Source: Pocillopora damicornis
Taxonomy: Eukaryota
Reading direction: 5' to 3'
Length of the DNA: 64,000 nucleotides
Assembly: GCF_003704095.1 (NCBI RefSeq)
Contig: NW_020846166.1
Span: 248,001-312,000 of the forward strand
The notes below the pieces were generated by a model. It searched no databases and was not told where the DNA came from. It saw only the letters and a list, made by a program, of their open reading frames with translations. This document shows, one piece after another, positions 51,801 through 57,800 of this stretch (the stretch's first letter is position 1; each line of letters opens with the position of its first letter). A program made the position numbers and the translations under genes.

Positions 51801-54800
51801 CAATTGCAAGCAGAAGAAACCTCTGTAAACAAAGATCAGGCGAAGAAAGGTTTGGATCGTAGCCTCAAAATTTGAGAACATATGCAGACGGAAATTTGAT
51901 ACCCACAGGATATTATCTAGTTTTGTTTTTGTTGACTGCCTGTTGAAAGTGTTTAGTATTATGCGATGTTGGATGGTTAACACCATTCTGGATCTTTCTG
52001 TTACTTTTTGGAAGCTTAAGTGAGACCTCAAACACCTGGAGGTCTTTTAAATTTCTTTCAGGCGACTTTTACCTTTATAAACTAGTTTTGAGTAAAATAC
52101 TATTGGTACTGTCTTATAAATTTTCTGGAAAAATAAGATTTTGAATTTACGAGAACATACTGACTAAAATTTCAGTAACCAGTAATCACATGTCCTTTTA
52201 GAGGACTTTTTGTGTGAAACTCAGGCAGCAGGTTTGCAAGTCTGCAAATGGAAGATTTTGATAAAAATAAACAATCTGTTTAACAATTGTTACAAAGGAG
52301 ACCAATATTTAACGATCATTTACCAAAGTCCGCCACAGAAAACTCTGTTTGAAGCAATTTTACTCTGATGGAACTAATGGGCTGACGAGATCGAAATTGT
52401 TTTTCATATTATCGAAATTTCAAGGGTGCACCGAGTGTATTCACCTTCTTCTCCTGAGTTTTAAGCCTCGTCTGCAACTCTCTCTTCTCTTTATCCAGCT
52501 GTTCAACTTGTCTGGCCAGGATATCATCTGCATCCATGGCTTCAATTTCCTGTTTAACAAGAAAGCAACAAAAGTTTGAACCCAACCTAACTTCACGTTT
52601 GATCACCAAGCAACCAATTTGAGTCATACGGAAAAAGTACCCATGGAAAAAAAGGATAGAGAACAAAACTTAGTGAATGGGGGTAGCTTCATTGACACTC
52701 TTCCCATATTCTGAAACTACGGCTCACTTAGGTTAACGACTCATCAACCTTACGATTTACGTGTTTGTCTGTAAAAGTAGAGGGACAGTAATCCTAAAAG
52801 CCGGCAAGAACGCCCACAATTTTAGTACCTCAATAGGGGTGTTTCTTAGCTCGCGAAAAAGTTTGAGGCTTTGAACAAAGCTATAGCCAGCGAGAGATCT
52901 GTAGATGGCGCAGCACTGACCATGTCAGACCCACAGCACACCTCTCTCCTACTCATCTCAAATCTTCTGTAGATTGGGAAACACTGAGCACCCAACTCTG
53001 CTAATGAGGGGTTGCTCACAGGCTATAATCCTAACCTTCGTTAATTCATTTACATACTTTATCTCGAGCTTTCAGAAACTACAATCGTCTACTATTTGAC
53101 AAGTCATTTGAATAAGAAAAGCAATAGTGAAACTTTTGAAATTCTTCTTTTTCTGTTCTTACCTGTTAATTTGGATGTCCAAGTTTATCCATCAAAAGAA
53201 ATGGCCACGAAAGAGGAAACAGAACAGAACGATTAGTCACTGTAAAGACTGGCTGGGCGAAAATGTTCTGAACGTCACACAGACTTGCTGTTAATCAGCC
53301 TATGGGTGGTTCAATCTTATCCTCATAACATTGGTGGATGCTAGGACAAGTTGATGTTTGATTCTGTCATCATTTCTCACAGCAAGAATTGAGATACATT
53401 GTAAGGCAGTGCTTAAATTCACTTGAAAGAAACTTAAATTGTCTGAAGAAATTCAAAAGTTAAGTTAAGTTTCCTAGTCTACAACATATTTTGCAACGTT
53501 CGAAACATTCCCTTACCCCTGACAACGATGGCGACGAACGATGGGAGGGGAAAAAGTGTTTCAAAAAAACCTTAGAGGGTTGTGTGTAGGGTAGGAAGGG
53601 CATGTTGTATTGTTGTAAGAAAGGATTTGATTGATTGGATTGTCTTGCTTTTATTTATTTATTTTTATTTTATTTTATTTTTTTTCAAAGAGACAGCAAT
53701 AAAAGAAAAGAAAAATCAAAATATTCTCCCAGATTATTGTCTTTTTTCCTAACGGAAATTGCTTTCAGGAATTGCCTCAGGCTAACTGTTTACTTTTCCC
53801 AATCACCACACTGGAGAAAGGGCATCACATGAATAATTTAAAAAAAAACGCATCACCTCCTCTGTCAAGTCTTTCAGAGCCTTTGCCCCCACAGTTGTTT
53901 TCTTGAGAGCAGCAATCTTGTCCATAGCTTGCTTCTTCTCAATCTCCTGAAGTTCTTGCTTTCTTCGGAGCACCTCTCGTTTCTGTCTCTCTTCATTGAG
54001 TCGCTTCTGTTCAGCTTCCAGATTCTCCTTCTGCTGTAACCTCAGCAACTTCTGTTCTTCTCGCTCCTAGTACACACACAAAAAAGACCACTCAAGTCAG
54101 CATACATTATACTCAGCATTACACATGTTTGGATGTACTGCAGAGCAAACATTCAATGAGCAAAACAGTACACAGAGTAGCCTGCACCCTGGCCCTCATT
54201 GACACAAACGTTTCTCAGCCCACATTAAAGTATAAGGCCTTGAGCAATGCAAGTTAGCCAGTGCTAACAAGCATAATGTCACATTCCCATCCAAACTCTC
54301 CCCACCTGGTCTTGCTGTGCTAATAATGAGAGTCTGCACTATATAGAGAGAGTGAAAAAACCATGGACAATTGTAACATGCCTTCAAGTCAATGCATTGT
54401 CTTTTACTTTTTTTTTTGTACACAATTATCTGTTCATTTGTCTTGCAATCATCCAAAAAATATAACGAAGTTCTTGCCTGTTTCTTTTGATGACAGTTAA
54501 TCTGTTACATGTAGCTCTTGAACCTATTGCAAATGTTCACCTCAAATTTGTTGCAGAAATCATTAACCCTCGTATGGGAAACAGGAATGTTTCCTTTGAG
54601 AATTGAACATAAAGTGTATAACACTTGAATTTGCATCTAAGATGAATGTAATGAGGAAAGTCTCAAACAAACTCAGAAAATAAGTGAAAAAAAAACCAAA
54701 AAAACAATGGACTTACTCTTTTAACATGGAGTGACTCCAGATATTCTTTGCGAGCCTCAATCACAGCCTTCCTTTCCAGCATCTGTTTGTGTTCTTTTTT

Positions 54801-57800
54801 AGATGAACGTAAATACACCTGAATGATCTTCTGCTGCTCTTCTTGGCACTTTTGCTGAGAGTGAAAAGGAAAACAATCTTTGTTAACGAAAACCTCTAAC
54901 CCTGTCACATCACCTCACAACATGCTGCATCGATCATCATGCCACACCACATCAAATCTGCTAGTTTACCAATAGTTATCTCCCATCAAGTCACATCAAT
55001 CATTTGAACCCTTGGGTGACTAAAATTTATTTTCTCCTAACAAAACATTCAGGGTCACGAGAATGAAGGAATTGATCCCCAACTAAAGAAACACCAGATT
55101 TTCAAACATATCATTCGCCTTTTTAGTGCCTTGGGTAATGTATAGAGAGTAGTATGGGGGATGTGCATACTAATGGCAGGGTACAAAATGGTTAAATCAC
55201 AGCAAACACATAAAAAGAGTCACTGTTCTTACCTATTCAAGATTGAATCCATATGAGAGTTATCCACAGGAGCAATTAGCATGAAATAGAGGACAAAAAA
55301 ATGCCATATTAGTGATCTACAAGATCAATCTTTCAAAAGATGTTTCTTGCGTAATGCAGACTTGCTATTCATCAGCCTATGGGTGGTTCAATCTTATCCT
55401 CATTACAATGGTGGATGCTAGGACAAGTTGATGTATGATTCTGTCATCACTAAGAGCAAGTCTGAAGGGGAGGCTAAACATTTCCAATTCAGCTTCCTCA
55501 CTGTTCTCCTTTTCAGGCAGTAGCTGGTAAAATCTACCACCAGTGGTACTTATCATAATTTTCTATAACTGCTTGAAATTCTTGAAAATTCAGTCCATTT
55601 GAAGATTCATTTTACTGTCCTGTTTAAAACAAGGGAAAACACTGCTTCCAAAAAGAGAGCAGTAAGTAATGTATGGTTGTTATATTTGTGTACAGTTAAG
55701 CCTCTTTAGATTGTACAAATGATGATAAACAAATACATAACTGTTACTGTGGGATGGAACCTCCATTAGTCTTTGAAAAAGATAAGGCAACTGTCTTTGT
55801 ACTGACAGTATTGTGCAAAAGGAATTTTGTTGAATTTTGTCAACAGATGTTTGCCTGACTTATGTACATGAACATTTAAAATATTTTACCTTGATGATTT
55901 CAGGCTGAATTTTATTAATGGACTTGTGCAAAGCTGTTGACATCAGTGTCAATTGGTTTCTGAGTCGCTCAGATGGCATGGACTGTGAAAGCAAAAAGAA
56001 AAGTACAGTGTAGTTGACTAAGACGATAATAATGATAACACTAATAGTCATAATAATTGCACTTGAGTGTTGTAAAACCAAACCAAAAGTAATCACAACA
56101 GCAACAAATAAAATGTTATCACAAACAGCCAATGTTAAATAATGTGAAAATATGTTAACAGTGCATAGAAAAGCTACACATGGGTCACCAAGTCATGACA
56201 AGTTTTAGTTTTGAAACAATAGGTGACAGAAAAGTGAGAAAAGTTTTCTTGACCAATCAACACAGTTGTGAAGTAAAACAGTACAAAGCTGGATTATTAT
56301 TAACACTCAAGAGACAACTGCATTTAACCAAGAAAAATGCAGAAAATTATATACCTGGAGATATGGCCCTTCTGGCACCTCCTCTTTGTGAGCCACATGC
56401 AAGTCAAGTCCAAAGCTGACGGCTTTAGTTCTGTGATCGATACGCACCTGCAAACAAAACAAAGTGTTTGTGCAATGTTTTGTTTCATTTTGTTGCACTT
56501 TTGCTTCTAAACATTCAACAGATTTGATTATTTCCAATGACTGCATCATGAGTAACAATAAGTCTACATGCATGTCTGTATACAAAAAGACATTTCTCAT
56601 CTCAAAAGTTAAAGGATCCCTAATCAATCTCTAGACAACTCATCCCAAACATTTAAGTCAGGAAGAATCACCACCCTATGTATCTCCACTGTGTGTCTTC
56701 CCAATAAATCAGTTCACCGATCAGAGTTTTGTATCAACAGAAATGTTTCACTAAAGCATACCTGAAGTTCATTCTGTTCAAATCAGTTCACTGATCAGAG
56801 TTTAGTAACAACAGAAATGTTTCACTAAAGCATACCTGAAGTTCATTCTGTAAAGCAACATCCACAATTGCTCTTTCCAACTGAAATTCTGTGGCAAATG
56901 GCACCAAGGATAACAGTCTCGAGAACTCAATGGTTTGGTACACCTGTGACACCTACAACAAAAGTACAAGTTATACTGAGTGACTTGTTCTTATTATAAC
57001 ATCTTTCAGTTCATACATGCACTACAATTGGTCAGTTTAGTGAGCCTTGTTTCACACTGCCTGCTAAATTCAAAAGTTTGTTTGAATTGAAATCTTCCTC
57101 CTCTATTTAAACCTAGAGATATAAAAAATATCTCTGAAATGTCATTATCTCACTCTGTGCTGTAAAATACAAAAAGATGGTTCTTTTTTTCCACTAAGAT
57201 TTATGGCCCCTGCACTTCAGTCTGGGGCTTAAAATCTGAGCAACAAAACTTAGACTGACCTTGAACTCTTTCTCACATTTGGAAAGCCTGATTGTTTGAA
57301 TTTTTATGAGTTAGTACATGTATAAACACATTTACAGCAACAATACCTGTTTAAGCAGCCGCACAATGGCAACATACTGCAAGGGTTTAATGTACTGATT
57401 TAGTTCTAATTCTTCATTCTCCTGTAAGAATTCAAAGAATTCATTGACCCTGGAACAAAACTGAAGAGGAGAGAAGTCCTTTTCAAGGTTCTGGAACAGA
57501 TCTTGCAACTGTGGCATTATGTGCTGGTGGACATTCAACTTCAACTAGAGTAATCAAGGAAAAAAAAAAAATTATTGAATGTACCCTGAAACCCTGTACC
57601 TTCCAGAAGTGATTAACATGTTACTTCTGCTTATTATATCTATACCTTATTCTGCAAATAGAGAATGAGAATACTCAAACTCATTGGGAGAAAGTTTTTC
57701 TTGATCTAACAGCAAATTCTCTTAACTAATTTTAGAGGAGATGTGTAGCAGTTAAAGGAGGAAATTAACTAAGGTTTCAAAATTTAAGGCAAGATTGTTC

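Follow-up and report, generated by a model that had tools for sequence, protein, structure and literature searches.

A putative zero-length exon behind an intronic box C/D snoRNA in the eIF3a gene of Pocillopora damicornis and other corals

Recursive splicing via zero-nucleotide exons is established in long vertebrate introns, and in animals it has been regarded as a device for very long introns. In the long introns of Drosophila, such recursive splice sites are known as ratchet points (bioRxiv 10.1101/006163, Duff et al.; PMC6110457; PMC8605326); the recursive introns in flies span 11-133 kb and their segments at least 2.6 kb. In the small nucleolar RNA (snoRNA) clusters of Candida and Debaryomyces, zero-length or one-base exons lie between snoRNA-bearing introns, and splicing follows nested or recursive orders (PMC5033589). 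Similarly, SPNCRNA.445, the snoRNA61 host of S. pombe, has an internal zero-length exon in a 336-nucleotide (nt) intron (bioRxiv 10.1101/226894). Here, we describe a related arrangement in the eIF3a gene of the coral Pocillopora damicornis. The stretch of DNA that we analyzed, referred to below as the window, was 64,000 nt long (assembly GCF_003704095.1, contig NW_020846166.1, positions 248,001 to 312,000). Two eIF3a introns on its minus strand each carried a box C/D snoRNA followed by a module in which an acceptor AG was fused to a donor GT. We consider it probable that each module is a zero-length exon that splits an eIF3a intron of about 1-1.3 kb, that this intron is taken out in two steps with the downstream half first, and that the snoRNA is thereby kept about 60 nt from a branch point.

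The coral sites resembled fly ratchet points in their juxtaposed acceptor and donor (Yn-YAG/GTAAGT-like, with a slash marking the splice point here and below), in the conservation of the site, in the unchanged mRNA, and in the piecewise intron removal that they would allow. They differed from the fly sites in scale, with introns of 1.0-1.3 kb and segments of 378-694 nt, and in context, as they lay at a fixed distance behind a snoRNA and had a distant branch point and a long AG-free zone. Residence in a very long intron, which is typical of recursive sites in animals and is no mechanistic requirement, was not found, because the two coral introns were 1307 and 1035 nt long.

It is mainly from experiments in vertebrate cells that box C/D snoRNAs are known to belong about 50 nt upstream of a branch point. 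This optimum has been reported for intronic box C/D snoRNAs together with AQR/IBP160-coupled assembly (PMC8162545). The coral placement was similar in that box D lay 62-64 nt from the candidate branch A and in that sister copies of the snoRNA in other corals (alpha and gamma, described below) lay 70-114 nt from a real acceptor. It differed in that the nearby branch point belonged to an internal acceptor that had no exon, whereas the acceptor of the coding exon was 520-745 nt away. The snoRNAs and their boxes, as read from the sequence, were as follows.

53284 to 53386, minus strand: snoRNA copy 1 with its external stem, box C/D, in eIF3a intron C-D; the stem pairs CTTGCTGT (53386-53379) with ACAGCAAG (53291-53284)
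53373 to 53367 and 53298 to 53295, minus strand: box C (ATGATGA) and box D (CTGA) of snoRNA copy 1
55361 to 55460, minus strand: snoRNA copy 2, box C/D, in eIF3a intron A-B; the stem pairs CTTGCT (55460-55455) with AGCAAG (55366-55361)
55450 to 55444 and 55375 to 55372, minus strand: box C (GTGATGA) and box D (CTGA) of snoRNA copy 2

The two copies were about 100 nt long and about 95% identical to each other in a pairwise alignment, and the snoRNA was present in just these two copies across the 234-Mb genome. Both had a box C, a box D, an external stem of 6-8 bp, and a C'-like TGAGGA, and these features were kept in the orthologues. RNA evidence came from Logan assembled contigs of four runs from four studies, namely, X1 and X5, which were poly(A) runs, X8, and X10, which was random-primed. 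Depths are rough, with a single figure per contig, and assembled contigs lose rare forms and display neither lariats nor kinetics. In X10, the depth over snoRNA copy 1 was 89 compared to 48 for the mRNA, which on this contig-level evidence indicated that the snoRNA accumulates as a stable small RNA. The same run contained an adapter-bounded fragment at 53366.

When the minus strand was re-read downstream of each snoRNA, the coordinates that had been reported in a preliminary description of this locus for box D, the branch motif, the AG-free stretch, the junction, and the upstream AGs were all found to be right. The parts of the modules were as follows.

53232 to 53239, minus strand: putative branch-point-like motif TGACTAAT of module 1; branch A at 53233, 62 nt past box D and 70 nt before the AG
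53165 to 53239, minus strand: AG-free zone of module 1, 77 nt between AGs; the branch motif is followed at once by pyrimidine tract TTCTGTTCTGTTTCCTCTTT, with pyrimidines at 18 of 20 positions
53153 to 53164, minus strand: putative zero-length exon of module 1; CAG acceptor (AG 53164-53163) fused to donor GTAAGA (53162-53157); 12-mer AGGTAAGAACAG
55308 to 55315, minus strand: putative branch-point-like motif TCACTAAT of module 2; branch A at 55309, 63 nt past box D
55235 to 55316, minus strand: AG-free zone of module 2, 84 nt between AGs, holding a pyrimidine tract
55223 to 55234, minus strand: putative zero-length exon of module 2; TAG acceptor (AG 55234-55233) abutting the donor GTAAGA (55232-55227)

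At the junctions, the sequence was AACAG/GTAAGAACAG in copy 1 (53163/53162) and AATAG/GTAAGAACAG in copy 2 (55233/55232), and the upstream AGs stood at 53241-53240 and 55318-55317, respectively. Module 2 also contained a second GCTAAT about 43 nt before its AG, with a candidate branch site at about 55276, and module 1 had a second candidate site about 30 nt before the AG at 53163. The spacer between box D and the branch motif was about 55 nt long and unconserved. When the copies were aligned, the spacer was near random and the 12-mer at the junction was identical; the homology ran from the snoRNA stem to 10 nt past the GT, which defined a unit of about 230 nt. Judged by sequence statistics, the module pattern exceeded chance. 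Specifically, AGGTAAGAACAG occurred exactly twice in the window (0.43 occurrences expected with one mismatch allowed), AG-to-AG gaps of at least 77 nt made up about 1% of such gaps in the eIF3a gene, and only 4.3% (copy 1) and 3.6% (copy 2) of composition-matched shuffles stayed AG-free.

Among the acceptors of human exons that are regulated, a class with distant branch points marked by AG exclusion zones has been described (Gooding et al. 2006, PMC1431707). The coral modules shared with these acceptors the long AG-free stretch from the branch point and pyrimidine tract to the acceptor AG; they differed in that the zone belonged to a zero-length exon behind a snoRNA.

The host gene was identified as eIF3a because its N-terminal exon matched eIF3a proteins with PF22591 and PF01399 in a protein search (in one search, the matches were to vertebrate eIF3a only). 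Joints in the RNA contigs fixed the intron bounds and bore out the exon-intron structure that had been drawn from the sequence. The exons, introns, and half-introns were as follows.

55890 to 55982, minus strand: eIF3a exon A, donor AAG/GTAAAA, from RNA joints
55889 to 54855, minus strand: eIF3a intron A-B, 1035 nt, from RNA joints
55233 to 55889, minus strand: upstream half of intron A-B, 657 nt, carrying snoRNA copy 2
54855 to 55232, minus strand: downstream half of intron A-B, 378 nt, including a dispersed repeat of about 150 nt
54717 to 54854, minus strand: eIF3a exon B, from RNA joints
54716 to 54067, minus strand: eIF3a intron B-C, from RNA joints, used as the control intron
53857 to 54066, minus strand: eIF3a exon C, donor GAG/GTGATG (weaker than the module donor), from RNA joints and splice-site reading
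53856 to 52550, minus strand: eIF3a intron C-D, 1307 nt, from RNA joints
53163 to 53856, minus strand: upstream half of intron C-D, 694 nt, carrying snoRNA copy 1
52550 to 53162, minus strand: downstream half of intron C-D, 613 nt, GT..AG
52445 to 52549, minus strand: eIF3a exon D, from RNA joints; its acceptor serves exon C and the module donor at 53162 alike

In all four runs, the dominant joints were those that removed 53856..52550 and 55889..54855 (depth, 48-550), and the final mRNA had no insert at the module sites. In addition, a joint from 53162 (GT) to 52550 (AG), which removed 53162-52550, was observed in X1 (depth, 14.7) and in X8 (depth, 4.9), two independent studies. The contig carrying this joint extended upstream through 53240 to the snoRNA, which indicated that the upstream half-intron was still attached, and no unspliced continuation across 53162 was found in X1. 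These findings showed that the GT of module 1 functions as a donor to exon D.

The depths of the half-introns were examined in the same runs. For intron C-D, contigs were continuous from exon C to the snoRNA at depths of 12 in X1 and 8.5 in X5 (mRNA, 549 and 128, respectively), so that a few percent of the poly(A) RNA retained this upstream half. The upstream half of intron A-B had depths of 19.8 in X1, 5.2 in X5, and 13.2 in X10. The corresponding values for the downstream halves were 4 in X1 for intron C-D, 2.8 in X1 and 4.7 in X10 for intron A-B, and about 0 in X5; the control intron B-C had depths of 4.5-8. For both introns, the depth of the upstream half in the poly(A) runs exceeded that of the downstream half 3- to 7-fold and was also above that of the control intron. 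In the case of copy 2, a 162-nt contig of X5 (contig 17) aligned from 55375 to exactly 55233 and then continued with 19 letters that were not collinear with 55232, which was suggestive of a splice from the module 2 donor.

The conservation of the module was examined in other corals. Coral contigs were gathered via short open reading frames over the eIF3a exons and via one JGI pattern scan with the snoRNA core, and exons A to D and the snoRNA were mapped on them. Of the matches listed in the JGI scan, only three came from corals (L093, L099, and L148), and most had arisen by chance in unrelated metagenomes; L122, a chance match that was labelled as human gut metagenome, was left out of every analysis. 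Six Pocillopora contigs, whose exons were about 100% identical to those of the window, kept both snoRNA copies and both modules. In the non-Pocillopora lineages, the exons were 78-84% identical to the window. Up to three copies of the snoRNA were distinguished there: alpha before exon A, beta in intron A-B, and gamma before exon B. The lineages were as follows.

L027: no alpha; beta present; junction TAG/GTAAGA; a type II copy in an intron far upstream
L099: contig too short for alpha; beta present; junction TAG/GTAAGA; type II gamma 70 nt before exon B
L093: contig too short for alpha; beta present; junction TAG/GTAGGT; no further copies seen
L035/36: alpha present; beta present; junction TAG/GTAAGC; no further copies seen
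L038-40: alpha present; beta present; junction TAG/GTAAGG; type II gamma 74 nt before exon B
L037/41: alpha present; beta present but degenerate in appearance; junction CAG/GTGAGC; no further copies seen
L025/26: alpha present; no module and no junction; a degenerate copy at the gamma position

Copy 2 is the orthologue of the beta copy, and the position of beta in intron A-B was shown for L027, L035/36, L037/41, L038-40, and L099; L093 was a short contig without an eIF3a exon, in which the host intron was not visible. The same architecture was found behind beta in all six lineages that had beta, with 124-147 nt from box D to the junction, an AG-free zone of 75-94 nt, and a YAG/GTRNG junction. 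The module was thus kept in lineages with an exon identity of only 80-84%. This conservation in related corals was one of the outcomes that the preliminary description had looked to as a check. When the window was included, acceptor consensus elements (branch point, pyrimidine tract, and YAG) were fused to a donor consensus in eight of eight modules, each of which had a T-rich tract with 16-20 pyrimidines per 20 nt; a CTAAT-type motif was present in six of the eight. A YTRAY motif lay 62 nt past box D in copy 1, 63 nt in copy 2, 64 nt in L027, and 63 nt in L038, and the intervening sequence was unalignable. L093 also had TAACTAAT, and L099 had the variant TACTCAT at the aligned position. The strong T-rich tract directly followed the branch motif in all six beta lineages, and a stretch ..GTGGA..TGGACTTCAAT.. 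was kept behind beta across the six.

The alpha copies provided a useful comparison. They occupied an ordinary position, 86-114 nt before exon A, and sister copies that abutted a real acceptor had AG-free zones of 28-40 nt, compared to 75-94 nt in the eight modules. At position -3, all eight junctions had YAG, and six had TAG; the donors of eIF3a itself (AAG, GAG, and AGA) had no T there. The half-intron behind the junction was unconserved and measured about 130, 147, 378, 470, 560, or 770 nt. No snoRNA was found in L043, a cnidarian-like locus that is more distant.

Two motifs between the pyrimidine tract and the junction, (A/G)TGGA(A/T)A and TGTGGACTTCAAT, were also kept across genera (e.g., 53172-53195 and 55236-55268). 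These motifs may be enhancer-like stand-ins for the missing exon or partial pseudo-targets of the snoRNA guide.

Because the RNA joint showed that the module contains a donor, the module was best read as a zero-length exon. In the pathway that we propose, the strong internal donor CAG/GTAAGA would splice to the acceptor of the next coding exon and remove the "empty" downstream half; for copy 1, this donor use was seen in RNA. The branch point, pyrimidine tract, and AG of the module would then abut the coding exon, and the snoRNA would precede the branch point by a few tens of nt, which is the optimum for splicing-coupled assembly of box C/D small nucleolar ribonucleoproteins (snoRNPs). Finally, the weak donors of exon C (GAG/GTGATG) and exon A (AAG/GTAAAA) would splice to the regenerated acceptor; the products would be the normal mRNA and a short lariat, and trimming of this lariat would release the snoRNA. 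Past the branch motif and pyrimidine tract, the first AG was 70-90 nt away. This long AG-free stretch, which was kept in eight diverged sequences, together with the T or C at position -3, resembled selection on an acceptor that is used and would be unexpected for a mere donor or exon. Similarly, the distance from box D to the branch motif was fixed at 62-64 nt while the spacer drifted, which pointed to a coupling between the snoRNA and the branch point. We infer from these features that the internal AG is used as an acceptor.

The order of the two steps appeared to be downstream-first, the reverse of classical recursive splicing. In flies, the upstream segment is removed first and a donor is regenerated, whereas the coral intermediate that we observed was one in which the downstream half had been removed and an acceptor would be regenerated. 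The preliminary description had suggested recursive splicing, and this part of its proposal gained support from the use of the GT donor in X1 and X8 and from the layout kept in six lineages; however, the intermediate that it had predicted, in which exon C is joined to 53162, was not seen, and the downstream-first form was seen instead. Specifically, neither classical recursive joint (53857 to 53162 or 55890 to 55232) was present in the contigs of the four runs, which lose rare forms, and an upstream-first path may coexist unseen. If the order is downstream-first, no distinct junction is expected from the use of the internal AG.

Several observations weighed against a two-step pathway through a zero-length exon. 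No joint or lariat had a module AG as its acceptor, and the downstream-first product is indistinguishable from that of direct splicing, so the second step was read from sequence signatures. The joint from 53162 to 52550 had a 6-nt microhomology (AACAGG), the form that retained the upstream half could be a dead-end isoform, and the RNA evidence came wholly from assembled contigs. In the case of copy 2, the joint was a hint only, and the L030/L031 haplotype of Pocillopora had the weaker donor GTAAAA instead of GTAAGA (G+5A, equivalent to 55228 in the window). In other corals, the type II paralogue of L027 was about 440 nt from its acceptor and had no AG/GT module, and the L037 junction was kept even though its beta copy looked degenerate; the coupling between snoRNA and module was therefore not absolute. 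Finally, a genome-wide scan with the pattern CTGA-N54-64-CTAAY-N60-80-AGGTRAG yielded 98 matches compared to 86 for the control, and none of the 30 matches that were sampled had a long AG-free zone or a C box. With this single explicit pattern, no other instance of the module was found in the genome, and nothing indicated that the design is a general one there.

Four other explanations were weighed. The most durable, which we nevertheless regard as unlikely, was that the GT is a mere alternative donor and the AG is never an acceptor. Transcripts that retain the upstream half would then be unproductive, through nuclear retention or nonsense-mediated decay (NMD), and would couple eIF3a or snoRNA output to a regulated splice choice. 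It is consistent with this explanation that the sole intermediate seen was of this form, polyadenylated and at 2-3% of the mRNA depth, and that acceptor use was proven by no joint. However, an alternative donor leaves unexplained why AG-free zones of 75-94 nt, a fixed branch distance, a pyrimidine tract, and mostly TAG at position -3 were kept in all eight modules, and why two lineages had a second-half snoRNA at the canonical position.

The second explanation, which was raised in the preliminary description and which we now consider very improbable, was that the upstream AGs and the GT define poison cassette exons of 77 and 84 nt with stop codons, thereby tying snoRNA output to NMD of eIF3a. 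snoRNA host genes are known NMD targets, the AGs do exist, and that of copy 1 had a passable acceptor (tctttacag). However, in none of the four runs was exon C joined to 53239 or exon A to 55316, and the X1 contig passed through 53240 unbroken and without a branch. In L035 and L038, the sequence before the corresponding AG was A-rich and lacked a pyrimidine tract; in all lineages, the strong tract came after that AG. Moreover, an exon has no reason for AG exclusion.

The remaining two explanations had scarcely any standing. According to one, the AG/GT is a functionless relic, and the similarity of the modules reflects only the duplication of copy 2 into copy 1; in agreement with this, copy 1 was restricted to Pocillopora, the homology ended at GTAAGAACAG, and ACAG at +7 to +10 after the GT was common to the two Pocillopora copies only. 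Shared ancestry, which the preliminary description had allowed for, did account for the origin of copy 1, but it did not account for why the module was kept: the spacer diverged to near randomness while the junction stayed identical, the module was retained in six other lineages, and its donor was used in RNA, which largely refuted a neutral relic. The other, that the RNA joint arose by template switching during reverse transcription or from an allele with a genomic deletion that spans the interval between both AACAGG repeats, drew on the six letters that fit either side of the joint and was contradicted by the canonical GT..AG at a consensus donor, by the recovery of the joint in two independent studies, by the joined form being the dominant continuation in X1, unlike a rare artifact, and by the full intron in six of six Pocillopora DNA contigs.

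Fungal hosts carry one snoRNA per spliced unit. In the window, this was not so, as the downstream halves lacked a snoRNA-like or structured element. The downstream half of intron C-D had no conserved or structured element (fold z-score of -0.02) and no similarity to the other downstream half. In the latter, positions of about 55045-55195 were occupied by a dispersed repeat of about 150 nt with at least 435 candidate copies in the genome (73-79% identity). An RNA depth peak (66-155 in three runs) and many loose contig ends in the downstream half of intron A-B were due to this repeat. The absence of excess structure in one half and the repeat origin of the depth peak in the other argued that no second RNA is hidden there in Pocillopora. 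In one Pocillopora contig (L033), the repeat stretch at about 55045-55195 was missing or masked.

In L038-40 and L099, in contrast, the second half-intron ended with an intact type II C/D snoRNA, the gamma copy, 70-74 nt before exon B. The type II subtype had the stem GCAG../..TGCAG together with TGAGGAGAATCTTAACCACCCAT (L027:1140-1240, L038:5345-5450, and L099:1358-1452). The order snoRNA, AG/GT, snoRNA in these two lineages is the fungal design, with the one-snoRNA-per-intron logic of the fungal clusters. Because gamma was at the same site in L099 and L038-40 and was degenerate in L025/26, it is likely that the ancestral coral intron A-B held two snoRNAs, one per half, that were split by a zero-length exon, and that gamma was lost repeatedly. 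The exon tree was weakly resolved, with support of 51-66 at the deep nodes, and the ancestry argument is one of parsimony and position, not proof. Under this scenario, Pocillopora would have lost alpha and gamma and kept beta with its module, and the unit of about 230 nt would have been copied as a cassette into intron C-D. Outside Pocillopora, no lineage examined had a snoRNA copy in intron C-D; copy 1 is a Pocillopora-lineage duplicate of the intron A-B module. The snoRNA family moved among eIF3a introns during coral evolution.

The coral module was therefore not a new principle, given the precedents in fungal snoRNA hosts. With these hosts it shared a zero-length exon in a short intron, nested or recursive orders that give the same product, and one snoRNA per spliced unit. 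However, the fungal hosts are noncoding polycistrons, whereas the coral host is a conserved animal protein-coding gene. In addition, the site persisted without a second-half snoRNA in Pocillopora and three other lineages (four with L093, whose contig stops short of the next exon), and the Pocillopora unit was duplicated into another intron. The preliminary description had stated that no such device had been described, which was too strong in view of the zero-length exons of fungal snoRNA hosts (PMC5033589; bioRxiv 10.1101/226894). Full-text searches covering recursive and zero-length-exon splicing, the position of snoRNAs, and AG exclusion zones yielded no such animal example. Thus, what is new in the coral case is the animal, the conserved protein-coding host, the introns of about 1 kb, the persistence without a second snoRNA, and the duplication of the cassette.

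A broader reading, to which we assign an even chance, is that corals carry a self-contained, intron-portable snoRNA cassette. The cassette would consist of the snoRNA, a branch point about 62 nt away, the tract, an AG-free spacer, and YAG/GTRAG; it would turn any intron into two while leaving the mRNA untouched, and it would predate the split of the sampled scleractinian lineages and have persisted since, survived the loss of its partner snoRNA, and been transposed between eIF3a introns. If this reading is correct, splicing-coupled snoRNP assembly would be guaranteed wherever the cassette lands, and the coral module would be the first case of zero-length-exon recursive splicing in short animal introns that serves snoRNA biogenesis rather than intron length. 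An early-branching animal would have kept, over deep time, a splice-site pair that apparently serves only to supply an intronic snoRNA with a branch point of its own. This would be evidence from selection that position-dependent, splicing-coupled snoRNP assembly is ancient in animals, and RNA biogenesis in short introns would be among the tasks that zero-length exons can perform. On the practical side, the module is compact, at about 230 nt, and could be tried or employed for expressing snoRNAs from arbitrary introns, and "retained-intron" or "alternative-donor" isoforms annotated in snoRNA hosts may be splicing intermediates.

In the case of copy 2, pairing of the snoRNA guide with the acceptor region may add a further layer. 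The D guide, TAAGATTGAACCACCCATAGG (21 nt; 55396-55376; identical in copy 1, 53319-53299), paired at 20 of 21 nt with 55238-55283, just upstream of the copy 2 AG/GT. The pairing fell into two blocks, CCTGTGG and TGGATTCAATCTTG, and its energy of -20.6 kcal/mol was reached by none of 300 shuffles. Five other Pocillopora haplotypes had this pairing as well (-19.3). It was weaker in L099 and L093, and copy 1, L027, L035, L037, and L038 lacked it. On the basis of this complementarity, the snoRNA or snoRNP could mask or fold the internal acceptor of copy 2. Intronic snoRNAs that pair with the adjacent intron and influence host splicing have been described (PMC10324135), and the D guide resembled them in pairing near the copy 2 junction; it differed in that strong pairing was confined to Pocillopora copy 2. 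As a defining feature of the module, guide pairing was rejected, since it was absent in five of the eight modules.

The Pocillopora haplotypes also provided a view of variation over shorter times. The copy 1 junction (53172-53147) was invariant in seven haplotypes, with variable sites closely flanking it, and snoRNA copy 1 had a single variable site among the seven. The AG-free zone of module 1 had a (GTTCT)n length polymorphism and four substitutions among haplotypes. Specifically, the pyrimidine tract at 53217-53231 was a (GTTCT)n microsatellite that differed by one to three units among DNA contigs and had a 10-nt insertion in the X8 and X10 RNA contigs. Every variant of this tract remained AG-free, and no substitution in either AG-free zone created an AG. 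The G at 55238 of the window was a C in six of six other Pocillopora contigs, which gave TTCAATAG, as in other genera.

Both Pocillopora copies had ACAG at +7 to +10 after the GT (53153-53156 and 55223-55226), which makes a second AACAG 10 nt downstream and was kept in no other genus. Recent common ancestry, gene conversion, and lineage-specific constraint are candidate explanations for this shared sequence. An A-rich (AAAT/AAAAT)n tract at 53640-53690, which belongs to the upstream half of intron C-D, differed in length from one Pocillopora contig to another.

An Rfam search, at the gathering threshold and at E<=10, assigned neither snoRNA to a family. A C/D scan of the window found no further credible snoRNA; the stem-offset rule of the scan also missed both genuine copies. 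Full-length complements of the guides matched the genome solely at the snoRNA genes themselves, and short guide matches to partial rRNA loci were at chance level only. Nuclear rRNA was mostly absent from the assembly, which held only fragments of the small- and large-subunit rRNAs and had no match to the universal 18S stretch GGTGGTGGTGCATGGCCG... As a candidate target, ACCACCCATAGG may match the "CCUAUGGGUGGU" region of 18S, a U33/snR55-type site, over 12 nt.

One further RNA difference was noted outside the snoRNA-bearing introns. In the intron after exon D (52327-52393), the X1 and X5 RNA contigs omitted 65 nt with noncanonical ends (GT..TC, plus strand), which probably reflected an indel difference between colonies rather than splicing.

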